Both the position numbers and the translations under genes were made by a program. A stretch of 64,000 nt of DNA from Octopus sinensis. Its lineage: Eukaryota. The stretch spans positions 29,760,001 to 29,824,000 of the forward strand of contig NC_043020.1 of NCBI RefSeq assembly GCF_006345805.1, given 5' to 3'. The notes below the pieces were generated by a model. It did not search any database and was not told the DNA's origin. It saw nothing but the letters and a program-made list of their open reading frames with translations. Each line of letters starts with the position of its first letter. The stretch's first letter is position 1. Shown here one piece after another: positions 1 through 60,552 of this stretch.

Positions 1-342
1 ACCTTGGGTAAAGGTCTTCTTCTATAGCCCCAAGCTAACCAAGGCCTTTTGAGTGGATTTAGTAGATGGAAACTGAAAGAAGCTTATTGTACAGTTTGTG
101 TCTGTAGAAGTGTGGTATTATGTGTCTCCTTGTCCTGATATCACATGATTGTTGTAAATTTGTGCCACTGTTATTCAAACCTATTCTGCTAGAACATGTC
201 TGGCAATGGGGAAATATTATCTTGCTTGGAATCAAGTGAGGGTCAGTGACAGCAAGGACATTCAGCCACAGAAGAATCTCTCTTAGTAAACTGCATCTGA
301 CCCATGCAAGCCTGGGAAAGTGGGTATTAAAATGATGATTAG
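1..342 (+). mobile_element. Composite SINE (family A), cut by the window edge
   Basis: CCTTGGG(C/T)AA CORE-like box, then gtggattt(a/g)gtagatggaaactgaaagaagc, a ggggaaatatta(t/c)cttgcttgga body and a ccatgcaagc...aaaatgatga tail. Same layout as 21179-21603 and 27960-28570. Confidence 0.7.
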
Positions 343-1060
343 ATAGATACCGTATTTCCATGCATACAAGTTGGTGTAGTTTATAGTATAAGCATCCAAA
401 CATTGTTGCATGGAATGTTTGGTCCTCCAAAGTCTTGGGGTAAAAGTCGACTCCTTTTTTTTTTCTTTTTTTTGCTGTAAATTTTGGCCTGAAAATTTGA
501 TTTCTGTCCCAGAAAGTACAGAAGATAGACATGATAAGGCTTATTTTTGACATTTGATAATCTTTGCCTTTCTGCAACTCAAAATGTAGAAGTTTCTCTC
601 TGGCTGAGAATTGCTTCCTCTGTCAGCCATAATTACCATTACACACTTCCTTATTCTCATACCTGCACTCCTTTATTCTCTCTTATTATTCTCACTGACT
701 CACAAATTTGCATTCTTTCTCCATTCTTTATTTGTAGAATCCTCCACTCCTCTTCATTGCCAATCTTTCTTTCCACTTCACACACACACACACACACGCT
801 CAGTCACCACAAGTAACTTGAATATCATACTGGACTCTCTCTCTCTCATCAGTCTATTAAGCTATCTCTTTCTCTCTCTCTCTATCTATCTATTTATCTT
901 TATAATACTTTCTTTTCCTCTTTTCCACCCCTTTCAACACAGCCATGGCCTTCTCTTTCCACATTCTCTTCTTTAACCCAAAATAGGAAGCCAGCAAAGA
1001 AAGGGACTTGTGAAATGGGGGTTCTTATATAACTGCTGAATATTTATGCATATGTGTGTG

Positions 1061-4534: not shown

Positions 4535-5175
4535 TTATTCTAAGGCTGTGGTGGATATGTCATTTGTTGTAGACGCATTCGAAAGGGGTATGTATTTTGT
4601 AATAAAGAGAGTCTCTTTACTAATTTGTTGGCTACGGGTTGTATCGTCCCTGAATTGGTAGAGGGGGAAAATTCTGAAGCTTGGATTTTTGTTGTTGGTG
4701 CAAATGTCGATGTGTTGGCTGAAGGCTACTTTTCTGTTTTGGGGAATTTTGATCTGGGATCTGTGCAGAGCCATTCCTTTACGTAGACTGTTTTTTGTTT
4801 GGCCTATGTATTGCTCTTGACACCCAGAGCAGGTTAGTGTGTATATCAGGTTCTCTGAAGCACATGTGAAGTTGCTTTCCACTGTGAAACGTTGTCCCCA
4901 TTTGAAGGAGAACTCTGATCCCTCAAGTAACTTAACACATAGCCCACAGTTGGGTCTTCCGCATTTTTTTTACTGACGACTTCTGTGTTGTTGCTGAGCA
5001 TATTCTGGCTTGTGTTAGGAGATTTTTCATAGATTTGGGTTGTCTCTTGCTTTTTATGATGTGTGTTTGGAGGATTAAGTTCATTCTGTGGTCCTTTTTT
5101 AGCAGGGGAATGTTTTGAAGGATGGTGTGAAAGGCTTCATTGTTAAGAGGGTTGTGTGGGGCTATAGTAGATATT
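4535..5175 (-). mobile_element. Penelope-like element 3' fragment (Cys-rich linker plus GIY-YIG endonuclease), frameshifted
   Basis: Minus strand reads ...KRQPKSMKNLLTQAR...KK, then a frameshift in the T8 run at 4964-4971, then CGRPNCGLC...FTCASENLIYTLTCSGCQEQYIGQTKNSLR...KETLFITKY. This is the typical PLE IY...YIG endonuclease layout. Confidence 0.85.
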
Positions 5176-5833: not shown

Positions 5834-5907
5834 ACAAATTGGCAACAATCTTGTCATTCCAGGTGGTTCAAGAACTATTGAAGCCAAGAACAAACTGGTC
5901 ATTCCAG
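5834..5907 (+). CDS. DPYS: DHP/CRMP coding exon B
   Basis: ctttcag|A...CCAG|gtaggt. (K)QIGNNLVIPGGSRTIEAKNKLVIP(G). 74 nt, phase 2 to 1. Confidence 0.94.
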
Positions 5908-10116: not shown

Positions 10117-10632
10117 ACATGCAATACCACCACCACCATTTAACAACTACTTTCCATGAGAGGTAACAGGGACTTTGAAGTTCCAGCCTGCTAGCTTCCA
10201 TCAACTTTGAAGTCTATTTTGTGTAAAAGTATTTAAAAAATGTGTACAAAAAGTACCAAGTAATTCTTCAGTTTAATGTGAAATTGTTTTTATTATTTAT
10301 AACTCAACATAAAAACCAGCATTGCTCTGTGTGTGTGTGTGTGCTTGGTAACTCTGTCAGTGCTGGTGCCATGTGAAAAATACCTGTGATGGGGGCCATA
10401 AGAAGCACCCAGTGCACTCTGTACAGATGTTGGTATTAAGGACATCCAACCATAGAACCACACCAAAACAGACAAATGGAGTCTGGTGTGGCCCCTGACC
10501 TTGTCAGCTCCTGTCAAACTGTCCAACCCATGCCAGCATGGAAAACAAACATTAATTGATGATGGTACTTATGTATTGAACCTCTTTCTTTTTGATGAAG
10601 TTATTTGCAGGATTATATTTGCCTTTATTTAA

Positions 10633-10785
<153 letters not shown>

Positions 10786-11094
10786 TAGTCCAGTAACTCA
10801 GTCTCTTCAACAACCAATATTATCTGCAGACTTTCTTCTTCTTACCGTTTTCTATCTTGCAATATCACTTGAAAATATCCTGTTTTAGAAGCAGTGGCAT
10901 AACTCTTTTAAATTCTTGGCATTTCAAGCCTGCCATTCCCCGTCGGAATGAATTGGGCAGTGTTTCTGAAACAGTATTTTATAACCGGTTGCCCTTCCTG
11001 TTGCTTCTTTCAAGACACAGGGACATGGAGTATTTATTCTAAAGCCAAGAACACAAGAGAGAGATTAATCATTTAATCCTTTTCTTATTGTGTT

Positions 11095-11337
11095 TCAGTC
11101 AAAATGCAGGGTTTGCAGAATGTCTTTGTTGAGCTCTACAGATCTTCCAGGATGAGGTTCATCTTCTGGGCTGTAGTTTCTGGCTCGGACTTTCTGGAAC
11201 CACCTTTGACACTGGCTTACACTTATTGTCTGATCCCCATATTCTGCATTAATATTCCTCGCACTTTCCATTGCATTGTTGCCTTTATTGAACTCATAAA
11301 GCAAAATATGCCAAATATGCTCCTCTATGACTTCCAT
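11095..11337 (-). mobile_element. Mariner-family transposase N-terminal HTH fragment
   Basis: HIWHILLYEFNKGNNAMESARNINAEYGDQTISVSQCQRWFQKVRARNYSPEDEPHPGRSVELN resembles the Mos1/Hsmar1 HTH region (LLYEF..G..A.E..RNIN..YG...W F.KF..G...LEDE...GRP). Truncated. Confidence 0.85.
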
Positions 11338-12424
11338 TATATCTTTGTTAATTTATAATTATTGATGATTCTTAAATATTGTTATATTGAAACATATATA
11401 TGTATGAAGAATTTCTTTTTTTTTGGGGAAATTTTTGGGTTATTTTGTTGGTTGAGGCGGTTCCTCTTATACTCTTATTGGTATGTTTTTCTATCTTTTA
11501 ATTTGCGTTAATTTTCCAATTGTAATACAATTAAAACAGACCAAGCATCGTTTTAATTTTTCTTCTCCACTTTCTTTTATTGACTTTTTAATTTTATGAG
11601 ACTGTTTATACACACACACACATACACACACACACATACACACACACACACATACACACACACACACATCTACTTAACTTTATCAGTTGCTGATCAGTCA
11701 AATACTCTGTGAGTTGGATCTGTGTGGAATCTAGGGTTCTCTGGATTACATGGAATTTGATTTCCCAGCTTGAAGGATGCTAATTGTTTCTCCTAAGAGA
11801 AATCTTGGAAATTTACTGGTCATTTTTAGAAGATTAAGGTTACATTTTGTCATAAGTCAATTTTAATCCCAGAGACAGATTTTCTACTTGGGCCCGAAAC
11901 TTACTGTGCTTTTGTACTTAAAAAGATAAAATGCAGACTTTCAGTGATCAACAGGGTTTATATGTTGCTGAGACCTTTTTTATTATATTCATCTTTTTTT
12001 GTTTCTCTCTCCAAATTTTTGCATTCAAAATTATGTGCCTTGAAGTACAGGCCGTCCTCAACACAAAAAACACAGGACACATTTTATGCATCTATTACAA
12101 GGGGAAAAGGCACAGAGATAGATAGATAGATGGGTGTGTAAGTTTGTGTTTCCTTATCTTGACATCATGTAATAGTTGAAAATGGGTGTCACTGTCATAG
12201 AAGCAGCACCATTCTTTTCTAATATTCAGCAAAATTATGTGTGACCATAGTAAAATATTACCTAGCTTGAGAGAGGGTTGGCAACAGGAAGGGCACCCAG
12301 CTGTAGAAAATCTGCTTCAATGACCTTTATCTGGCCGACGCCAGCATGACAATGGCGAACCTTTTGAATAGAATCTTCAAGAAATATCAGGCTGACCTCT
12401 AATGATTCTTTTCTTTTATTTCAG

Positions 12425-12589
12425 TGGATTTTGTGTTGGACCCTCGAGGCTGTTCACTCTTAGATGCTTATGAGAAGTGGAGAGATTGGGCTGATTCTAA
12501 AGTGTGCTGTGATTATGGTCTCCATATTGGCGTTACATGGTGGGATCCTCAAGTGGCCAAAGAAATGGATCTCTTGGTGAAAGAGAGAG
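12425..12589 (+). CDS. DPYS: DHP/CRMP coding exon D
   Basis: tttcag|TG...AGAG|gtaaat. MDFVLDPRGCSLLDAYEKWRDWADSKVCCDYGLHIGVTWWDPQVAKEMDLLVKER(G). 165 nt. Confidence 0.96.
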
Positions 12590-14436: not shown

Positions 14437-14711
14437 TATGCATATTAAATGCACGATTTGCATATTAAATCACTCTGTCACTACTGAGCTTTTTTTCTTT
14501 TCCTTGTGGCCAATTGCACATAAGAGGCTCTTAGTAGCAATGAAATTGAATTGGAACAAATAACCTGTAGTCTACGAATACTTTCTCCAGTTTCTACAGC
14601 CAGAAGTGTGTGTGTGTGTGTAGCATGGACATGGGATTAAGAAGTTTACTTCTCACCCATCTGGTTTCAGGTTCAATCCCTCTGTTATAATGCCATCCTC
14701 TTAAATTTCAG

Positions 14712-14854
14712 GTGTGAATTCATTCAAGATGTTCCTTGCTTATAAAGATTCTTTCATGCTGGAAGATCATGAGTTGTATGAATCTTTTAAAGTTTGTAAA
14801 GAACTCGGTTCCTTAGCAATGGTTCATGCTGAAAATGGTAAAATTATAGCTGAG
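14712..14854 (+). CDS. DPYS: DHP/CRMP coding exon E (carboxylated Lys and VHAEN His)
   Basis: tttcag|GT...GAG|gtgcgt. [48 protein letters not shown]. 143 nt, phase 1 to 0. Confidence 0.96.
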
Positions 14855-14969: not shown

Positions 14970-17900
14970 ATGCATGTGTGTATGTATAGATATATGTATA
15001 TTATGTGTATATGTCATTTTACATCAGTAAGCTTTGTTTGTTGTGTCCACTAATTTAGCAGTTTCACCAATAGAGATGTGGAATAATGTGTCATGCTCAA
15101 GGTTACGATGTGCTGGCTGATCAAGGAATCAACCCCTGATTTAAGGTTGTGAACCCAAAACTCTTACCATATTGGACCATACACCTTCACAGAGAATGAC
15201 TTTAACTATTTCTACCTGAGAAAATATAAAACCGGTTCTGCAGACAAAGAGTGAAGAGAGTTCTTTGGACCTGTCCAATGTGTGTCTTGTAATTTCCACC
15301 ATTTGAGACAATCCCTGTTGTTGCTTTAACATCCACTTTGCCATGCCTGCATGGATCGGATGGATTTTGTTGAGGTATATTTTCTATGGCTTGAGGCCAT
15401 TTCTGCTGCCATCCATCACTTGCTTCCACGTGAGGCAATATTTCCTTATAACCAGACATTTTCATGGAAGACCAGAAACTCACATCGGTTGCAAAACGAT
15501 GACATTTGCATACAACTGTCGTGCAATGTCAAGGCAAAGAGTCAGTAACACACACCATCATCATCATCGTTAACATCCGCTTTCCATGCTGGCATGGGTT
15601 GGATAGTTTGACTGAGGACTGGCAAGGTTTCTACAGCTGGATGCCCTTATGCCAACCACTCCGAGAGTGTAGTGGGTGCTTTTATATGTGCCACTGGCAC
15701 AGTGGCCAGTCAGGTGGCACTGGCATCAGGATTCTTTCAGCATTTGTTTACCAAATCCACTCACAGGGCTTTGGTCAGCCCAGGACTATAGTAGAAATCA
15801 CTTGACCATGGTGCCATGCTGTGAAATCAAACCTGAAACCATGTTGTTGGAAAGCAAACTTCTTACCATGCAGCCACGCCTGAATAAAACAGAAAACCAA
15901 TGATGATGAGGAGGAGGAGGAAGAGGATATAAAAATGGAGTGGGGTGGGGTAAATAGATTAAAATATTTTGAACACTTAATTAGGGAAAAATGGTTTACA
16001 GAGATTCCTCATAGAAGGCAAAACGAATGATAAAGGGAAAAAGGAAAACCATTTATATATGCAGATAATGTCACAAATTGACTTAAAATCCAATCAATGT
16101 ATAAGGGTAGCATAAGGCAGAAGATGGCAATCTGTGGATTTCTAACTGTTAAGTATAGACATTACCTGGTGAAGGTAGTGGAAAAGGTGACAATGACTCT
16201 GGCAAAATGGATTGAAATAGAAAATTTCAAGTGTTCGCTTAAAGCATTGTTTATGTGTTGTTTCTGTTTCTGTGGTCTTGTCATTTAAATGAATGAATAA
16301 TAATTAAAACAATCTGGTGTATTCCATCGTTGTTCCAGGAATGATTTTAAATGTCTTAACAAAAAAATACAACATAGAATTGGTATTTTCTGCAAGTCAT
16401 GTTAGCTCAGTAAATAAGGTATGCCTCAGCAAAAAAATAATTTCAAACCTTGACATTTCTTCACAAAAGATAGATTGATATATATATAAAAACTGCTTTC
16501 TGCAGTTAAGAGCCATGAGATTTTGAGTGGATACCTCTGATTTTGGCAGAAAAAAATGGTTAGCCTAAGAATATGAGCCACAGCCACATGGCTGAAACAA
16601 GTGAAAGAGTGTGCAATATAAAATGGTTTTTGGTAAAATGTTGCCATCATATATATTCACTGGAATTTCAAAAAAAAGAAAATTACACAATGGAAAATGG
16701 AGAGAAAAATTCTTTCATAAATTGAAAACAAAATATTTAATGAAATATTTTGTTCATTAAAAATGTAATTCTATTTTCTTCGTTATTTGTTTAAGATAAA
16801 ATTGCATTTCTTTCTGTAATAAAAACATGACGGGTCTTGTATGTTGATGATTCATGCTTGGATATTCTGGGATGACTCACTCCCAACTCACTTCTTTAGG
16901 CAGCAGCAGCAGCTAGAAGCTGCTGCTGCCATTAAAAACTGCTCTGAGCGTTATTACTATCCATTAGCCGTCTCATTTGTTGTAGTGGAAGTTCCTATGA
17001 GGTTTCTAACATGAAGTCATATTAAGGAAATTACTCAACATTGCACTTTAAAATACAATCAATTTATTTGTTGGTTTTGATCAAATAGCGATGGTTTAAG
17101 TTGAGGATGGTTGGTTTAGTAATCTGTTGGTCTGTGTTTGGAAAGGAAATGAAATTATCAAATTTGATCAGGAACAAAACTGAACATATGAATTTACATG
17201 CACATGACTATATATGTGTGTGTGTGTGTATGTATGTAGAAGGTTGAAAAGGAACACACAAGTTGAAATATATGGAAAAAAAAAAGTCAAGATAGAAAAT
17301 GCTAAAATAATTTTATGAAAAACATGTCATTGAGACTTTTTCAATTCTAAGTATGGAAAATAATTAAATTTTGGAAAAATTAAAGAAAAGTTTTTAAAAG
17401 AATATTTGTAAAATTATTTTAGCATTTTCTACCTAGACTTTTTTTTTCCACATATATATATATATACACACACACACCTACATACATACATACACACATT
17501 GTTTGTTCAATATCAAATTTTATCCTTTCCTTTAAAATATTGAAATAGAATGATTTTGTCTGTGTAAATAATTTGCATTAATGATTTTTTGGGTCTTAAT
17601 TTATACAGTTTAACCTACCTCACCTTTTATCAGGGTTACAGCTTGTCATATAGTTACCATCTGCTGACTATTCATTGTCTCTTCCAAACAGCTGTTCTTT
17701 ATCTCCTTTGACCTGTCTTTTACTAGCGCTAACATATCCTTACCTTTTTTTTCTGAATACTCTGGTGATGAATAATATAACCATAATAGAAAATCGTTTC
17801 TATTCATTCTGGGAGAAATGTGAATATCTGATCTGCCAGAACATATTTAAAATGTGGTTAAGGGTAGCTTGCTCCCTAACCATATGGTCTCAGGTTCAGT

Positions 17901-21723: not shown

Positions 21724-21792
21724 AAATCTAAGGAATTGATCGCTATGGGTATCACAGGGCCAGAAGGACATGAAATGTGTCGACCTGAAGAG
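21724..21792 (+). CDS. DPYS: DHP/CRMP coding exon F
   Basis: ttacag|AAA...GAG|gtaagt. KSKELIAMGITGPEGHEMCRPEE. 69 nt, phase 0 to 0. Confidence 0.95.
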
Positions 21793-25481: not shown

Positions 25482-27684
25482 TTCTAATATTCTTGCAGAA
25501 TAATGGAAATGAATGTCACTGCTTGTATAACAGTGACACTCATTTACAACTATCATATGATGTCAAGAAAGGGAACCACACACTCACACACAGACACACA
25601 AAACTGGTTTCTTTCAGTTTCCTTCTACCAAATTCATTCGCAAGGTTTTGGTCAGCCTAAGACCATAGTAGAAGACACTTGCTCATGGTGCCATGCAGTG
25701 AGATGGAACCTGAAACCATGTGGTTGTGAAGCAAGGTTCTTACTATACAGCCACATCTGCACCTATTCTATTTTGTAAACTGCAGAAACAATTTGGATAT
25801 GGAACTGTTTAACCCTTCCATGACCAAACCCTCTGAGATGGCTTCTGGTTCTTTGATACAAAAACTGGGGTTTTAAAACTGCTTATATTCAAATAAAATG
25901 CCTCCCACCAGAATTTGCATCCAAGAATATTTTGCAATTTCCCAAACATCAGCTTAATCTCCCAATGAATGAAAAAAGTTGGTTATTTTATTAAATCCTT
26001 CTTAATTCATTATTTTAAAAGTTAAGAATTAGTGCAGAAAGAAAAAAATGATTTTTGCCAGAACTCAATACTGAATCACCAAATATTTTACCACATTCCT
26101 CATCTCCAACAATTCTTTCATCCTCATCTTCATCGCTGCCATTCTTATTGGTTTAACACTTTCCCAGTCTCAGTTGAATTCTAATCGTCTGTTTACCACA
26201 CGGCATATATTCATTTGTGTTTTGTGATCTTTAAGTTTTTAACCAAGCATGCTCCATCCACTTTTGTTGTGTTTCTATTTGTGCAGCAGATTTTAACACC
26301 TACTTTGGCCCTTTTTAAAATTTTTTATTTTTCCTCTCCAGTGCACTTGCACTCAGCATGACAAATGTCTCCAACTTCTGCTTGGAACTCATTTGTCCAA
26401 TTGACCGTCTTTGTGTGGTCGTTACAAAGCAAGATACACCAGCAACTGCCTCCATACCAATGCTGTTTAAGTATATCTCATAAGCATACCAGCTAAATTC
26501 TTTTCATAGTAAATTCTCATACCCCTCAGGAATCTGTTACCATCCCTAGTTTTAAAGCCAAGCTATTTGAGTTTTTTGACTTTGTGTTGTTGTAGACAAC
26601 ATTGAAGTGCTTCAGAGGTTCCAACTCCAAATCACTATTCAAAATATTCTACCTCAACATTGCAGTTTTTAAAATCCACCCTTGATGTTTATCAGGGTGG
26701 ATTATTGCTAGTAATATTTTCTTGCAATGCTTGAGAAGTCTCTCAAAGAATTTTAATGTTTTAAGTATTGATAAAGATGATTAACTTCCAAGAAGCAGTA
26801 TCTTTTCTTTTAACCCTCAGATAGCACTGGTATGGGTTTTAGAATCTTGGCAATTAAAAGAAAAATAATTTAGATAAAGATCTGAAAATTATGGAAGGCA
26901 ACGGGACTCCTTGTAAATTATTAAATTCAGAACATATTTGTTTCTCCATCTTTGAAATGCTGCTCACTAAAAGCTACGGTTCTGAAGAAAAGCTGCACAA
27001 GAGGATTGCAACTGAGGAATCCCAGCTTTGACCTTTGTGACGAAAGTGATAGAAAGAAGGGGGGGGTGATGGTGTTTGGGTGCTCAGTCATCAGCTCTTG
27101 TATGGCTGGTTTCATTTTGTCTCATCTGAACACAATCCCTTTATAGGAAACTCTGAGATTACACAATGGAGTTCTGTGAGTGAACAGTTGTAATCTAGTA
27201 TGGACAATGACAATCTAGTACTGGACCGTGGCAGAGTACGATTGGACAATGGTATGGGATTGACATGAAAATCTGCAATGAAACTTAAAAGCCTAAAATT
27301 TTCTTCACAAAAACTTCCTTTATTTTGAGAACTCAAAGTATTTATCTATGAATACCAATTAAATTTTATACATAGAGAAATCATGTGCAGAAAACAGGTA
27401 TGGTATTCAGAGCTTTACAGAACATACACATGTTTCAGTAAAATGCTGAAAGGATTACATAATGTGTATAGATATTATGCTGTCATGCCACACATCATCA
27501 GTTTCCCAACATACATACATACATCCAGATGCTTCCACCACCTCTGCGCACTTGTGTTTGCTGTGTTTATCACTTTATGTCACCTTTTGTTTTCCATTTT
27601 ATTTTGTTCATTGCTGAATGTTTTGTGGCTTTGTTGCACTTGCATGCCTCGTTTTTTTATTTTTGTTTTTCAATTTTCTGCAAG

Positions 27685-27805
27685 GTGGAAGTTGAAGCAA
27701 CAGACCGAGCGATTATGATTGCCGATCAGGCTAACTGCCCCCTCTATGTTGTTCATGTAATGAGCAAAACTGCTGCTGATAGTGTCGCATTGGCACGGAA
27801 GCAAG
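27685..27805 (+). CDS. DPYS: Mutually exclusive exon G1 (dihydropyrimidinase type, His retained)
   Basis: ctgcaag|GTG...CAAG|gtctgt. [40 protein letters not shown](G). 121 nt, phase 0 to 1. Confidence 0.93.
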
Positions 27806-27959
27806 GTCTGTCCTATGAATTGAGCATTTGATCACCAGAAAATTTGTTGCACCATTTTTTTTTTTTTCTCCAAACAAAATTTCAGAAAGAAAATTAATTT
27901 CACAATTTTCACCAATTCTCCCCCCCCCCACCATCTTTCCTATTTTACCATTTTATAGG

Positions 27960-28570
27960 TGCAAGCATTGCTTCCTATCTGGTCTCAGGTTTGGTCCCTC
28001 TTCATGGCACCTTGGGAAAATGTCTTCCACTATAATTCCAGGCAAACCAAAGCCTTGTGAGTGGATTTGGTCGGTGAAAACTGAAAGAAGCCCCATTATA
28101 AATAAATAGAGAGCGGAACCTTGACATATGAATTCAATTTGTTCCTGAAGGTCATTTGTCAACTGAAATGTTTGTAAACTAAAACTATTTTTCTCGTTAG
28201 GAAATTCAAGAGAAAGCCTGGCAAATTCAATCTGGAATATTCCCTGAGCAAAAGCCAAACAGCAACTGACACTCTCTTGCTGCTGATACTCCCAGCTTGT
28301 CACCAGCTGTTGTTGCCTGTGTGTGTGTTCAGAAGGCAAGGTTCCACTGTATTTGCACATGTATGTGTGTACTCTTGTCCTGATATCACATGGTGGTTGT
28401 GAATATGTTTCCCATCTTCTCTAAAGATATGTCTGGCCATGGTAAATATTACCTTGCTTGGAAATAGATGAGTGTTGGCAACAGGAAGGGCATCCAGCCA
28501 TAGAAAATTTGCCTCAACAGATTTCATCTGGGCCTTGCAAGCATGGAAAAGTGGAGATCAAATGATGATG
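27960..28570 (+). mobile_element. Composite SINE (family A) in the intron between the two mutually exclusive exons
   Basis: ggcaccttgggaaaatgtcttcc head/core, later ggtaaatattaccttgcttgga...ggaagggcatccagcc...gcatggaaaagtgg...aatgatgatg. An unrelated segment lies between them. Confidence 0.68.
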
Positions 28571-29893
28571 GAAAAGATTGATTTCAAGCCAATGAAGAAT
28601 CTACCTCAACAAATGCTGTCTAATTCATGCAAACAGGTTAAAAGTGGATGTTAAAAATTAAGGAAGTCCAAATATAGTCTTGGAAAAGATAGGGTGGGGG
28701 GGGTTAAGATACCTCCTTCAATTTTTGTTTTTAAAACCAAATAATAATTGGTGAAAATAGTGAACAGTTTTTCGGACACTTTTAATGTTTTAATTTGGTG
28801 CAAGGAATTTTCTAGTTTCAAAGTTTTTGGTGGTGGTGGCTATACTGATGATGATGATCTTTTTTACAAACCTTGACTCTAATCTCTTAACCCTGATAAC
28901 CCTGGTTATCTGTTTATTATTTTTTTTTTCAGCAATTTATGTTTATTGTACCAGCTAACAATAGTAGATATAGTAGCAAAAAATATTCTATTTTTCTTAT
29001 TAATTCAAACATGGCTTATTTGACTGTCATCTATGCTGAAATTATTATTATTAATTAATTAAAAAAAAAGAAATTGAAAATCTCAAATTAATGAATTATA
29101 ATAATTTAATTATAAAGCAAAATCTCACCTGACATAGTTCTATATATTTTTCACTCTTTGATGAACCAATCTCTACATAATTTTAAATAGATTTGATATA
29201 GATTTTCTACATTCTCTGTGCTTCAAGAAAGGCAATGAAAACCCTGTAATTATTAGACCCTTGTTAGGGTCCCTTAAACTAATTATCTACTTTGGTTGGC
29301 TTTTGCCTCCACAATCAATATAGTCTGCAATGAACTAAGATGTAGTTTGTTAATCTCATGTGGGAATGCATGCAAGACAAACCCATGAATAAGGTGACAA
29401 CTGGACCATCATTTACCTATGTTTAAGCCAGTGTCTGTTTATTAAATAGATAGATAGGTACACCTATACACATCAATACATACCTGCTCACATCAACCAT
29501 AGACTTTTTTTTTTTCCTTCTTGTGTAATTTCTGCTTATTACAATCTCAGAATTTTTCTTTTAATGACAGCCTAAAATTCAGGGCTCCACTGATATTCTA
29601 ACATTAACAAGAGATGGTTTTTTTTGTTTTGTTTTTTTTCGCTGTAATTACAACCCCAAGAAAAGCCAGTTTTCAATCGTTTAAAATTCAATCTAAACTT
29701 TTAAAATTTGATTTGAAATAATTTCTGCTACTGACTTTTTACTATTGTTTCTCTTGCAATTTACATAATTCTCTTTCTTCTTTCCTCTCTTCCTATTTGT
29801 ACACACACACACACACGCACACACACGTGTGTGTGGCTGTGTACTTTTTCTGTTCCGTATAACCTGCTTTCACCAGGGACGTTCGTATTGTAG

Positions 29894-30014
29894 GTTGAAA
29901 AAGAAGCTGTACAACGTGCACTCACCATCGCCAACCAGGCCAACTGCCCACTGTATGTGGTTAAAGTTATGAGTAAAGCATCTGCTGAAACAATAGCAGA
30001 TGCTCGCAGATCAG
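29894..30014 (+). CDS. DPYS: Mutually exclusive exon G2 (CRMP type, His to Lys)
   Basis: ttgtag|GTT...TCAG|gtaggc. [40 protein letters not shown](G). 121 nt with the same phases as G1; 25/40 aa identical to G1. Not in the supplied ORF track. Confidence 0.92.
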
Positions 30015-34999: not shown

Positions 35000-35156
35000 G
35001 AAAAATAGTTTTTGGTGAACCAATAGCAGCCAGTTTAGGTACGGATGGAACACATTATTGGAACAAATGTTGGCGCCATGCTGCTGGTCATGTTATGAGT
35101 CCACCCCTAAGAGCAGATACATCTACCCCAGGTTATTTGATGGACCTTTTATCAAA
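35000..35156 (+). CDS. DPYS: DHP/CRMP coding exon H
   Basis: taacag|GA...TCAAA|gtaatt. [52 protein letters not shown](N). 157 nt, phase 1 to 2. Confidence 0.96.
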
Positions 35157-35463: not shown

Positions 35464-35605
35464 CAATGACCTACAATGTACAGGTACCGATAACTGTACA
35501 TTTAATGCTGAACAAAAGGCATTGGGTAAAGATGATTTTAGACGCATACCTAATGGAGTTAACGGAGTAGAAGACAGAATGTCTGTGATTTGGGAAAAGG
35601 GTGTG
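35464..35605 (+). CDS. DPYS: DHP/CRMP coding exon I (catalytic Asp, GTDNC)
   Basis: ttctag|C...GTG|gtacgt. [47 protein letters not shown]. 142 nt, phase 2 to 0. Confidence 0.96.
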
Positions 35606-35991: not shown

Positions 35992-36075
35992 CAATCTGGG
36001 AAAATGGATCCATGTAGATTTGTGGCAGTAACCAGTACCAACGCAGCTAAGATATTTAATATTTATCCCCAGAAG
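35992..36075 (+). CDS. DPYS: DHP/CRMP coding exon J
   Basis: ttctag|CAA...AAG|gtaaga. [28 protein letters not shown]. 84 nt. Confidence 0.96.
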
Positions 36076-36595: not shown

Positions 36596-36775
36596 GGGCG
36601 AATCGCCGTAGGTTCAGATGCTGATCTTGTTATTTGGGATCCAAATGCAACTCGTACAATCTCTGCTAAAACTCATCATCAGGCCTGTGATTTTAATATT
36701 TTTGAGGGTATGGTGTGCCATGGAGTACCATTGTATGTCATTATGGGAGGACATGTCGTCTTAGATGAAGGCCAG
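36596..36775 (+). CDS. DPYS: DHP/CRMP coding exon K
   Basis: ttttag|GGG...CAG|gtaaga. [60 protein letters not shown]. 180 nt. Confidence 0.96.
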
Positions 36776-37923: not shown

Positions 37924-38010
37924 CTTAAAGTCTCTCAAGGTCTTGGTCGTTTCATTCCTATGCCTCCCTTTGCTGAAACTGTATATGGACGTGTTGAAGG
38001 TCGCGAACGT
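37924..38010 (+). CDS. DPYS: DHP/CRMP coding exon L
   Basis: tttcag|CTT...CGT|gtaagt. LKVSQGLGRFIPMPPFAETVYGRVEGRER. 87 nt. Confidence 0.95.
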
Positions 38011-39221: not shown

Positions 39222-39408
39222 GCAAGGATGCCCAAAAAGGTTGATCGTGAGCCGTACACTGGAACTGTTGTTGAAATTATGGCTCCTGAGGAATTTGACA
39301 CAAGGAAGTCGGACAATCCTATTCTACAGGATCCTCAACCATTCCATGCCCGACCACTTACTCGAAGCGGTGCTCGCAACCAGCAAGACTCTAGCTTTAC
39401 ATTGAGTG
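39222..39408 (+). CDS. DPYS: DHP/CRMP coding exon M (start of C-terminal tail)
   Basis: ctttag|GCA...AGTG|gtaagt. ARMPKKVDREPYTGTVVEIMAPEEFDTRKSDNPILQDPQPFHARPLTRSGARNQQDSSFTLS(G). 187 nt, phase 0 to 1. Confidence 0.93.
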
Positions 39409-42600: not shown

Positions 42601-45600
42601 TACAATAAAACAAGGCAATGCCTTGTATATTAAGCATTTTATTTTTTTTGTCTTGACTATGAAAAATAAAATGAAGACACCAATTTGCTGGTCAACAAGC
42701 AGGAAATTTTAAATGGTCGATGCTCTTTCTTGTATTTAATTTTAGCCAAACCGTTTGCTGGACCTGAAGTTTGGACTCACTGTCTGCGTTCCGCTATTTG
42801 TTGCAAAGTCTAGAACAAACTTTTATTTCACCATAAATTGCTGTCATTGACCATTAAATGCTGAAATAGGTAATAAGCTAACGATCTGAGCAATGCCACC
42901 CCCACTGTAGTTGATACTTCTAGGCTTAATTAATGGAACTATAATTAGGGACAACCTTAACGATGTGACTGTGTAAGGCAAAAACGTGTTCTTTCACTCG
43001 CTCTCTCTCTTTCTTTCTTACTTCCTGTCTCTCTCTTTCTCTATCTCTGGCAAAGGATGAAATGAACAATGAAATTCCAGCCACGTAAGATATGCCAGCA
43101 GCCGGCAGTAAATTCATTCCGTTCTAAACTAACCCTCACTAACACTTGACTCAATCAATCATGGAATATTTTTTTTCCAGTTGGCAAAGCTTTAACCTAA
43201 AAATTTTCATTTCTCAATAGAACAAGGAAATAACCAACGAAGGAGGGATTATCATTCAAACAGTGAGTAGGCCCCTTTCCAATGCACCACTCATCTTGGC
43301 TGATTTGAGCTTTCTAGCAACTCTAGAATGGACTGAGTGACTCGTCTCTCAACTGCCAAAACAAACCTTCCTGATAATTCTTCATATAAATATATCTTCA
43401 CATATCTCCTCGGTTTTTTTTTTTTTTTTTTTCAATGACTTTTCTAATAACCTTTTTGATTACATTTTTTGTATTAATTTTCACAGCTTCATATCATAAC
43501 ATGGCAGCATCTCAGTGAATGTTCTTTATTACTCACTCATTTTCTAGATTATTCTACAAGTTCTTACATCGGTAGATCCATACTGGAAAACCCCTTGGGA
43601 TGTCTCTCTCATCATAAACATCATTTTCCAATCAAATTATCATAGATTTTTGTTTTTTCATACAAATTATTCCATCCATTTGATCAGCATCTCATTTTAC
43701 TCACAAATCATCATCATTCCTTCTTCCACTATCACCATTTATTATTGCTAGGGCGGCAAACTGGAAGAATCGTTAGAACGACAGGCAAAATGCTTAGCAG
43801 CATTTCTTCCGTCTCTTCATTCTGAGTTCAAATCCTACCAAGGTCAACTTTGCCTTTCATCCTTTCGGGGTCAGTAGAATAAGTACCGGTCAAATTCTGG
43901 AGTCAGTGTAGCCCCCCTCCCTACAAATTTCAGGCCTTGTACCTGTAGCAGAAAGGACTGCAGAAATGTTTGACCCCTTCCAATAGCTTTGTGCTATTTC
44001 TTCCAACTCTTTACATTCTGGGTTCAGATTTGAATTGCATCAAGGTTGATTTTGCCTTTCATCCTTTTGGAGTTGACAAAATAATTACCTGTTATCTACT
44101 GGGGGTTGAAGTAATCGACTTCCCCCTCCTGTGCAAAAAAAAAAAAAAGGTGGCCCAGTGCCAAAATTTGAACCCATCGTCAATATTGTATTAATATATT
44201 TTTCTTTTCTATTTAATGAAAGAATTTCTCCTGTTGCAAAGTCCCTTTAAAACAGCAGATATTTAACCGTTTAAGGCCCCCCCCCCCTGATTCCTTCAGA
44301 CATCTGCTTCTGATAACACAAGTCAGGTTTTTATATTTTCATCGTTTGAGCTAAATTGAAGCCAATTAGAAATTTAGGGAAATCTTTAGAAACTAGAAAC
44401 TGCTGAATGCTGTCCCAATACAAACCCACCACTTTCCAAATGTGGGACCAGCTGATAGCCTTGAAATATTTTCTTTTAGAATCTTTTTTAGAATCACAGA
44501 TACATTTAAATGTCATACCATATACATTATGTGTATATATATTCTTTTGAAGGATTTGAGCGATTTCTTTACCCTCAAGTTGCTTTATGAAACAGCTTCC
44601 TCCTCATTTTTACATCATCTTAACTCTTCAGTGACCCCTTTTTTTCGGTTGGTAGCTTCTGAGCCCACAGCAGCCAATTTGACTTCTGAAAAAGAAAGAT
44701 TTTTTTCTTTTGGGTGTTGTAAATAGTTTTATTATTTATTTATTTATTTATTGGTTGATTGTTTTGGTGACAGGGATTTTGTTTTGGGTTTTTTTTTAAT
44801 CCTGATACTTTTCAGGGAAGTTTTATTTTCCCCCTGTTCCTGCTAAACATTTTCGTTATAGTTTTAGTATTTTAAAAAAAGGGCAATAAAGAAAAATAAC
44901 TTTTTGTGTATTTCTTGCTAATTAATGTTGGCTTATTTTGTTTTATTTTTAAAAACAATATTTTTTTTTTTCTAAATACACATTGTGGTTTTATTGTTGG
45001 TGTTTGACTACATTTTTAAAAAATATAACTAATCTAAGGTTGATTTTTTTTTTTTTTCTGTTTTTACTTCAGTGGGGGTAGGAGAAAAAAAAACATTTAA
45101 AAAAAAAAACTAGGATTTGAAATAATGAGTCTTTCTGCATGTTTTGATGAGCAATTTTCCCTCTAGAATTACTGGTAGTATTAATAAATTTGTGTTAGTA
45201 ACTCCAGCAGTTCCAGTTAAACTTTCAGCTCAACCCAATTGCTTTTTGTTCTCCGCACACACACACAAGTCTTTATATTTCTTGAGCTTCTTTATGGAAT
45301 TATTGATTTGCATGTCAACGAGTGTGGTGGTCGTGTGTAGATTTCCTGCAGTTGATGCTAGTCATGTGGACATCGGCTGTTTAGTTCAGAATGGTCAGTA
45401 TTGTGCATGCTGTATATACTAATGTGTGTGTAATGTTAGTGAAGACAACTGCTATTATTACTACTATAACTAGCACCGGTAATAATATATTTTAAACCTC
45501 ACCAGGTTTAGACTTAGACCCTTTTATTTAGACGAGTTCATTTTGAAGGTGTGTGAAATGGCTAAAGTTTGCATACATCATTACATACCTTCTCAGGTGA

Positions 45601-52149: not shown

Positions 52150-52850
52150 GTTGAGAGATAACAGTTTACTGAAAGTAGCTGCCCTTAGCTGCCACCTTGG
52201 GTGACTGCAAGATGGCCCCAGAACCTGGCACTTGCATTCCTTACTGTGTCACTGGGAAAATCTTCAAACACCTCCTTGGTCTTGACCGCCAGTTGTTGGC
52301 AGGGTGGTTGGTGCCTTTCTTAACTGTGCCCCACACATAGTAATCCAGGGAGTCACAATTGGGATTGGTGAAATCGTAGAAATTCTCTAACGACCACTTC
52401 TGTCTCTTTCTGGAGGTATGGCAAGGAGCCAAATCCTGCTGCCACACAAATGGCCTTCCAACAGCAACCCTCTTGAGCCAGGGATTGATCAGTCTCTAGC
52501 AGCTTCCCATAGGTCTGAAATGAGCTCCAGGCCCTGTTCAAAGATGTGGGGATGAATTCCACCATGCAGATACAGTCAGGATGCCTTCTGTGTCCCTTCC
52601 TGTTGACCATAGCTTCTCTTGCAGTTGTCCATGTCACATCCTGCACCCTTTGCAGTATGCACAGGGCATTGAGCAACTGTCATGATGTCAGCATTTTGAC
52701 ACCTGGTGTGAATCACCATCATGCAGCTTAACTCTTGCTCCAATATTCAGATGGCTTCCAGTCCGCCATGCCAACTAAATTTTTCTCAACTACAACTTCA
52801 ATCTTTTTGCTCTCCAACAGCATTGACTGTTTACCAATACATGGAGCTGT
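52150..52850 (-). mobile_element. Tc1/mariner DDE transposase remnant
   Basis: Minus-strand fragments WQQDLAPCHTSRKRQKW..ENFYDFT.PN..LDYYVWGTV and NACARF, typical of the DDE C-terminal half. Multiple frameshifts. Confidence 0.8.
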
Positions 52851-58035: not shown

Positions 58036-58124
58036 GTGCTCAGTATGATGACGATCGTCCCAAACGCTCGAGTACCAGAGTGAGCAGACCCCCTGGGGGC
58101 ATGTCTGACATATTCTTAGGTTAA
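58036..58124 (+). CDS. DPYS: DHP/CRMP terminal coding exon N
   Basis: tttgcag|GT GCT CAG...GGT TAA. GAQYDDDRPKRSSTRVSRPPGGMSDIFLG*, which aligns to the CRMP-family tail (SGAQIDD..P.R...R...PPGG...LG). Phase 1 matches exon M. Confidence 0.92.
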
Positions 58125-59419: not shown

Positions 59420-59869
59420 TGAATAAAAAAAAAGCATTATATTTGACAGAGTAATCTCGATGCCGAAGGATTAAGAATGCTAAAACTTTAAACCAGCCCA
59501 AATATTCTACATGTTTTATGTTCGAACCAACCAGATCTGGCCTCTCACACCTGCCCTACACTGTCATTCTAAATATAAAAAACCTCATTGAAATTTTGAA
59601 GCTATGAGAAAATGCAAGATTAATTCAAAACAACGTGAATAAATAAGTATTACATTTGATAAGGGAATCGAAATGTTAAACGCTTAGAAATATGATTTCC
59701 AATTTTCACATCAGCACCACTTCTTCATGCTTGTAGGAATCAAAGAGAATTTGTTGAGGCAGATTTTTCAAAGAAGTGCAGAAAGTTAACATTCACACAG
59801 ACATGCATACATCTATCACTCAAAGCGGTGTCGAATAAAAAAAGATATATTGAACAAAGTAACCACAAA

Positions 59870-60552
59870 GCTAAGCCCACACACAAGAGACATTTGCGTT
59901 GGTATGGTCATGTACTACGGATGGACGAGGAGAGATGTGTGAAGAAGTGCCACTCCCAAACAGTTGAAGGAATCTGGAGTAGAGGTAGACCCAGAAAGAC
60001 ATGGGATGAGGTGGTGAAGCATGACCTTCAAACGTTGGACCTCACAGACGCAATGATGAAAAACCAAGACCTCTGGAGATATGCTGTGACTGAGAAGACC
60101 CAGCAAATAGAGTGAGTTCATAGCTGTAGCCTACAACTAACCAGCCCACTCAAAAGTACCTTGGATCATAGGGCAACACGCTGTGCTTGAGGAGACCTAT
60201 CGAGTCAAGTACATCAAAATCAAATGGAAATTGTAGTTGTGATCCCCGTGCCGGTGGCACACAAAAAGCACCATCCAAACGTAGCCGATGCCAGCCCCGC
60301 TTTGACTTGCTTCTGTGCTGATAGCACGTAAAAAGCATCAACCAATCGTGGTCATTGCCAGCCTCCTCTGGCCCTTGTGCCAGTGGCATGTAAAATGCAC
60401 CCACTACACTCTCAGAGTGGTTGGCATTAGGAATGGCATCCAGCTGTAGAAAAAATGGAGCCTGGTGCAGCCTCCTGGCTTCCCAGACCCCAGTCGGACC
60501 GTCCAACCCATGCCAGCATGGAAAATGGACATTAAACGATCATGATGATGAT
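59870..60552 (+). mobile_element. RTE-clade LINE 3' fragment: RT C-terminus, 3' UTR and (GAT)n tail
   Basis: RHLRWYGHVLRMDEERCVKKC...GRPRKTWDEVVKHDL...DLWRYAV is the RTE-type C-terminal signature (RLRW.GHV.R...RGRP..TW). It runs straight into the abundant repeat ending ggacattaaacgatcatgatgatgat. Confidence 0.85.

Follow-up and report, generated by a model that had tools for sequence, protein, structure and literature searches.

In this study, a stretch of 64,000 nucleotides of the Octopus sinensis genome (NCBI RefSeq assembly GCF_006345805.1, contig NC_043020.1, positions 29,760,001 to 29,824,000 of the forward strand), hereafter the window, with coordinates counted from its first letter, was analyzed, and it appears to hold most of the octopus's single dihydropyrimidinase (DHP)/CRMP gene. 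Two homologous 121-nt exons of this gene, G1 and G2, lie in tandem and probably enter the mRNA one at a time, the form with G1 being a predicted DHP enzyme and that with G2 a predicted non-catalytic CRMP-like protein. They constitute a real and functional mutually exclusive exon pair, the exchange of which removes one zinc ligand of dihydropyrimidinase, and thereby a cephalopod and lophotrochozoan case of a kind known from Drosophila.

Two homologous exons of equal length and phase lie in tandem

Exon G1 occupies positions 27685-27805 and exon G2 positions 29894-30014, both on the plus strand, each 121 nt long and 2088 nt apart. An AG stands directly before each of them and a GT directly after it, and the sole open frame of each is the one entered in phase 0 and left in phase 1. 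Their translations are identical at 25 of 40 amino acids (62.5%) and their nucleotide sequences at 78 of 121 positions, and the differences at the first, second, and third codon positions number 11, 7, and 25, respectively, so that third positions prevail. Two paralogous exons of this length, phase, and identity, with intact reading frames and GT-AG sites, had been described in a sequence-only reading of this DNA, and all of these features were reproduced when the sequence was re-read and translated. In tblastn searches, G1 and G2 each matched mollusc dihydropyrimidinases at E values of about 1e-12 to 1e-13, a similarity far beyond chance, while no third copy of exon G was found within the 64-kb window by a permissive tblastn search. 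Adjacency, equal length, equal phase, and sequence homology, the features by which homologous mutually exclusive exons are recognized, are all present in this pair.

The length of 121 nt means that inclusion of both exons, or of neither, shifts the reading frame. When G1 and G2 are joined, a TGA arises at the G1/G2 junction, and when both are skipped, a TAG is met three codons into the following exon H. Both stops are located more than 800 nt ahead of the last exon junction, so mRNAs with both or neither of the exons should undergo nonsense-mediated decay. These frame consequences would at the least enforce exclusivity, that is, exactly one of G1 and G2 per mRNA.

Exon choice is predicted to decide whether the two-zinc center is complete

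G1 encodes His and G2 encodes Lys at the site aligned with His248 of human DPYS, a ligand of the second zinc in the human enzyme. In the alignment with the human structure 2VR2, the Lys of G2 stands opposite chain position 270, and as this chain has a 22-residue tag, position 270 corresponds to native His248; the earlier assignment of the toggled His to the DPYS H248 zinc ligand was confirmed by this alignment. The metal ligands were then tabulated from a MAFFT alignment anchored on DPYS with human numbering. The G1 isoform carries all six (His67, His69, Lys159, His192, His248, and Asp326) and the G2 isoform five, only the His248 equivalent being replaced, by Lys. The swap also alters 14 other residues in the same strand-helix segment. 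His192, the His of the HAENG motif, is encoded by the constitutive exon E5 and was invariant in 321 proteins, and the CRMP-type C-terminal tail is common to the G1 and G2 isoforms.

The six-residue dimetal center has been described as essential for DHP activity (PMC8860565). CRMPs, from which most of the ligands are gone, are without this activity; no more than two of the six are left in CRMP-4, its bridging Lys being Leu (PMC4051505). The same source, together with fragments reading PLY[IV]TKVMSK, bore out the earlier statement that vertebrate CRMP has Lys at the site and no DHP activity. With a complete two-zinc center, the G1 isoform is predicted to be a pyrimidine-degrading enzyme, while in the G2 isoform the dimetal center could not assemble, which would leave a non-catalytic CRMP-like protein.

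Across the ligand table, six of six ligands are kept wherever a gene or isoform has His at the site. Further ligands were lost in three of the four stand-alone non-His paralogues (P0331, P0350, P0360, and P0168, from Tachypleus, Babylonia, and Pomacea). In detail, the Tachypleus Lys gene shows the further losses H67N and D326N, the Tachypleus Asn gene H67N, and the Babylonia Pro gene H67I and H192R, while no further ligand loss was seen in the Pomacea Pro gene. This decay in separate non-His genes indirectly supports a non-catalytic role of the Lys isoform. In the octopus gene, the five other ligands lie in shared exons and are needed by the His isoform, so their retention is uninformative on the Lys isoform; the pattern is the one to be expected if the non-His form has no need of catalysis and these ligands persist in the Lys isoform only through exon sharing with the enzyme form.

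Annotated isoforms, a spliced transcript, and selection

The O. sinensis isoforms X1 and X2 (XP_029650795/796, 685 aa) differ solely in exon G, and so do X5 and X6 (XP_029650799/800, 596 aa), the difference in each pair being confined to the third through second-last residue of the exon. G1 is carried by X2 and X6, and the G2-type exon by X1, X3, X4, X5, and X7 as well as by O. vulgaris and Argonauta proteins. Likewise, the O. bimaculoides proteins A0A0L8HI31 and A0A0L8HH40 differ solely within exon G. In the 90% cluster around XP_014772445, each of the 15 cephalopod proteins listed carries exactly one version of exon G. These records indicate that G1 and G2 are real alternatives in the annotated isoforms.

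A spliced transcript was also found. The Logan contig L009 (SRR21372852, 2379 nt), which stems from a related cephalopod, is a cDNA without introns in which exon F, a G2-type exon, and exon H are joined, so the splicing into G2 anticipated by the sequence-only reading was observed in that animal. Its pieces follow the exon order of the window, and its protein is 92% identical to that of the window. Between this contig and the window, G2 has 15 synonymous and three non-synonymous differences, and the ratio of non-synonymous to synonymous substitution rates (dN/dS) is 0.039, as compared with 0.034 for exons E1 to L. G2 is thus not neutral but resembles the constitutive exons, its ratio being far from the value near 1 that had been named beforehand as speaking against a functional G2. 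The dS and dN between G1 and G2 were 1.99 and 0.31, respectively, and the G1 exon is identical at 39 of 41 positions between O. sinensis and O. bimaculoides. The dN/dS of G2 and the G1-G2 dS of about 2 indicate that the duplication is old and that both copies are under purifying selection, which is strong on G2.

The octopus switch is already contained in public annotation, in O. sinensis and O. bimaculoides and as an orthologue in Mytilus edulis, under the plain names 'dihydropyrimidinase(-like) isoform X...', while the His/Lys consequence of the exon choice is absent from the annotation of the Octopus and Mytilus isoforms. Full-text searches found no literature account of the exon switch in molluscs or other non-arthropod invertebrates. 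Though annotated, the switch is apparently undescribed in the literature searched, its principle being known from Drosophila.

The exon pair in other animals

The search for the exon pair was positive in the bivalve Mytilus and in the annelids Capitella and Paralvinella. In the genomes of Mytilus edulis (L002), Paralvinella palmiformis (L001), and Capitella teleta (L004), a 121-nt pair with AG/GT flanks and phases 0 to 1 is arranged as His exon then Lys exon, the Lys exon of Capitella being diverged. In Saccoglossus kowalevskii (L008), the Lys exon (14708-14828) comes first and the His exon (15107-15227) second. RefSeq isoform pairs that differ solely in exon G were found in Mytilus edulis (XP_071122481/482, X3/X4), Liolophura, Lingula, and Ptychodera. 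The His/Lys 121-nt pair therefore spans a mussel, a chiton, a brachiopod, annelids, and hemichordates.

A different arrangement was observed in the crab Chionoecetes opilio (genome L005), in which exon F is fused to codons 1-15 of G, and the duplicated unit consists of G residues 16-41 plus H, 77-78 aa (about 10625-10857 and about 11468-11703), in two versions, one with His and one with Lys, the latter reading PLYICKIMSK. In further decapods, judged at the protein level only, this position is taken by His, Lys, or Asn. No duplicate of exon G was found in the gastropod Patella, in the DHP-type gene of amphioxus, or in Nematostella, and the intron that interrupts G in the crab is also present in the amphioxus DHP-type gene and in Nematostella. 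In horseshoe crab and caenogastropods, the genes are separate, and the residue at the site is His, Lys, Asn, or Pro.

Nematostella, amphioxus, and sea urchin have DHP-type proteins with the CRMP-type tail (...SGF.LSG.Q.DD...PPGG...; P0181, P0154, and P0352), and this tail is missing from vertebrate DPYS, sponges, and Trichoplax (P0217, P0178, P0183, and P0198). Its occurrence on DHP-type proteins of cnidarians and other invertebrates indicates that the tail is ancestral and older than Bilateria, that vertebrate DPYS has lost it, and that it is not diagnostic of CRMP.

Weighing of alternative explanations

Several points stand against assigning an enzyme and a non-enzyme to the two octopus isoforms. 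Some amidohydrolases function with one metal, and the G2 isoform keeps five of the six ligands, unlike CRMP-4 with its two. Termite isoforms swap the same long block as the crab, and His is kept in both versions, so alternative exons can matter beyond the zinc ligand. In addition, the RefSeq XP isoforms are computational models, and the single transcript contig comes from a related cephalopod and shows the G2 form only.

The first of these points bear on the explanation that both isoforms are active hydrolases, the Lys form being a one-metal enzyme or one differently tuned in substrate, pH, or metal preference. The Lys isoform keeps the equivalents of His67, His69, Lys159, His192, and Asp326, and the termite proteins indicate that exon choice can tune something besides on/off catalysis. 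We nevertheless consider this unlikely, as the five retained ligands, being in shared exons, carry no information, and the stand-alone non-His paralogues have shed more of them; moreover, vertebrate CRMPs with Lys at the same site are without DHP activity (PMC4051505), and the complete six-residue center has been described as necessary for activity (PMC8860565). A marginally smaller chance is given to a mainly regulatory Lys isoform, which would co-assemble with the His isoform in a tetramer and lower or redirect its DHP activity instead of acting as an independent cytoskeletal CRMP. Mixed tetramers are plausible because the isoforms are identical outside 15 residues, and both DHPs and CRMPs are tetramers, with hetero-oligomerization of CRMPs discussed in PMC4051505. 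However, the two fly forms are placed in different tissues, neuronal and non-neuronal, by PMC8652244, and such a separation would limit mixing.

That G2, or G1, is an unused and decaying duplicate whose presence in the gene models is an annotation artefact is very improbable. The mostly computational isoform models would allow it, but the dN/dS of G2 matches that of the constitutive exons, the spliced cDNA contig includes a G2-type exon, and intact orthologues of the Lys exon exist in molluscs, annelids, a brachiopod, and hemichordates. As for G1, it alone completes the catalytic site, and it is nearly unchanged between the two Octopus species. With these alternatives weighed, the two exons are best explained as exclusive choices that would yield a DHP enzyme and a non-catalytic CRMP-like protein.

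If so, a 40-residue swap that includes one metal ligand would enable a single gene to supply an enzyme of metabolism and, with an identical structure, a protein that is no enzyme. The octopus CRMP is likely a splice form of the dihydropyrimidinase gene, and for this reason expression studies need counts of exon-junction reads and not gene-level reads.

Comparison with Drosophila and vertebrates

The original account of exons 9a and 9b of the Drosophila melanogaster CRMP gene (CG1411) is reportedly that of Morris et al. (2012, Genetics 191:1227). The octopus gene resembles the fly gene in that a single gene has paralogous exclusive exons and a conserved zinc-binding His is restricted to the enzyme form, predicted as such in the octopus. 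According to PMC8652244, the fly gene makes its DHP and CRMP forms through the mutually exclusive paralogous exons 9a/9b, the DHP form being non-neuronal and the CRMP form neuronal, which agrees with what the sequence-only reading stated of the fly. PMC7954323 confines the conserved zinc-binding His to the enzyme form, and gives the change as His to Gly at 'residue 192', in contrast to His to Lys in the octopus. Position 192 of the human numbering corresponds to the HAENG His, which the constitutive E5 encodes in the octopus, and the numbering scheme of that source may differ. Since the His248 equivalent is the sole zinc ligand inside the crab/termite unit, the site toggled in the fly may be this same one, numbered differently.

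The exchanged unit may differ as well. In the arthropods inspected (crab genome and termite isoforms), it is the second part of G plus H, 77-78 aa, while in the octopus it is the 40-aa exon G. The earlier proposal that the octopus uses the 'same splicing switch' as the fly accordingly held for the principle and probably not for the exon, as the crab and termite duplicate a different and longer one; on these comparisons the octopus switch would be the same as that of Drosophila in principle only.

Vertebrate CRMPs resemble the octopus Lys form in having Lys at the His248 equivalent, seen as PLYITKVMSK in fragments, and genomic read-through fragments hint, suggestively only, at an exon with the boundaries of G. 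In contrast to the octopus, the DHP (DPYS) and CRMP (DPYSL1-5) functions of vertebrates reside on separate genes, and vertebrate DPYS is devoid of the CRMP-type C-terminal tail that the octopus protein has.

Evolutionary origin of the His/Lys switch

It is possible, although somewhat doubtful, that the last ancestor shared by protostomes and deuterostomes already had the His/Lys pair of exon G. An old origin is favored by the same unit, length, phase, and Lys in molluscs, annelids, the brachiopod, and hemichordates, and by the exon G boundaries that vertebrate CRMP genes appear to share. Under a single origin, the separate genes of vertebrates (DPYS/CRMP), horseshoe crab, and caenogastropods would be later resolutions by gene duplication. 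Against a single origin, the exon order of Saccoglossus is reversed relative to octopus, mussel, and annelids; the duplicated unit of crab and termite differs; and the cnidarian and amphioxus DHP-type genes have other intron positions and no duplicate. Further, when 28 exon-G peptides were compared simply by identity, the Lys exons did not cluster by sequence; such a comparison cannot separate ancient origin plus concerted evolution from convergence. These counterpoints suggest that the switch originated more than once, or that heavy rearrangement acted together with concerted evolution. The alternative to a single origin, a repeated convergent His-to-Lys switch, would if true be notable in itself.

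With the distribution found, the origin of the CRMP family becomes accessible to direct tests. Many invertebrate phyla show the split as a choice between exons, while vertebrates, horseshoe crabs, and some snails have a gene for each form, and decay of the other ligands seems to set in only after gene separation. Alternative splicing and gene duplication would here be interchangeable routes to the same functional split, of which this family offers a clean example, and this broader evolutionary pattern is of more interest than the octopus case alone.

Gene model of the window

Mollusc homologues were placed on the window by tblastn, and the exon boundaries were set by hand. The resulting plus-strand gene has 14 coding exons inside the window, all introns being GT-AG with consistent phases, and it begins with a coding exon located upstream of the window. 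Of the coding exons within the window, the first, E1 (1729-1823), is identical to the O. sinensis and O. vulgaris proteins. It is followed by E2 (5834-5907), E3 (10670-10780) with the DTHTH motif that holds the equivalents of the metal ligands His67 and His69, E4 (12425-12589), and the constitutive E5 (14712-14854) with SFKMF, containing the equivalent of carbamylated Lys159, and VHAENG, containing that of His192. The constitutive exon F (21724-21792, KSKELIAMGITGPEGHEMCRPEE) ends in phase 0 ahead of the G pair, and the constitutive exon H (35000-35156) is entered in phase 1. Downstream are exon I (35464-35605) with GTDNC, the motif of the Asp326 equivalent, J (35992-36075), K (36596-36775), L (37924-38010), and M (39222-39408), in which, by alignment to CRMP2, the CRMP-like C-terminal tail begins. 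The last coding exon, N (58036-58124, AQYDDDRPKRSSTRVSRPPGGMSDIFLG), ends with the stop TAA. These assignments were based on tblastn together with splice sites and phases, or with the ligand alignment in the case of E3, E5, and I.

The product with the Lys exon agrees at every residue with O. sinensis X3 and O. vulgaris CAI9739994 and differs at 11 positions from O. bimaculoides, so that on the protein sequence the window belongs to one of the former two species. The 567-residue product matched human DPYS 2VR2 at E = 2e-238 over the window-encoded residues 2-496, and aligned along its whole length with CRMP2, residues 15-568, C-terminal tail included. Homologues of the window protein carry PF01979 and PF07969. 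Taken together, these matches argue that the window holds most of the single octopus DHP/CRMP gene.

Sequences around the exon pair and variable ends of the gene

No consistent Rbfox-type TGCATG signal was found near the exon pair across octopus, Capitella, Mytilus, and Paralvinella. One TGCATG occurs at 27641-27646 of the window, 44 nt upstream of the G1 acceptor; two occur upstream of the His exon in Capitella, one just downstream of it in Mytilus, and zero in Paralvinella. As for docking/selector-type RNA pairing, complementarity above shuffled controls arose, in the one cephalopod genome used, only from inverted interspersed repeats. Inverted repeat pairs flank G1 and G2 at 25606-25718/27980-28092, 24986-25073/28485-28572, and 28474-28521/32681-32728, and belong to two interspersed families with 11 and 19 copies in the window. 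Looping out of an exon by such repeats is conceivable in principle.

Rfam and tRNA scans of the window gave no matches, and neither did Pfam for the long open reading frames at 4538-4969 (minus strand), 52244-52495 (minus), 59696-60112 (plus), and 62-622 (minus). An open reading frame fragment at 11098-11352 on the minus strand, in the intron between E3 and E4, matches the HTH domain of the Mos1 (mariner) transposase (PF17906, E = 1.4e-17).

An optional 42-nt micro-exon encoding EQGNNQRRRDYHSN of the C-terminal tail, with AG/GT flanks, is located at 43221-43262 on the plus strand within the 18.6-kb last intron. It is included in O. sinensis X1, X2, and X4-X7, and not in X3 or the 582-aa O. vulgaris protein. 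At the other end, exons upstream of the window provide the O. sinensis isoforms with one of three N-termini, namely MTSRTPVKKVPIHLQ, MTMEFKKG, or a long form of 104 residues. The 104-residue N-terminus resembles that of vertebrate L-CRMP isoforms, and long and short N-terminal forms are each annotated with G1 or with G2.

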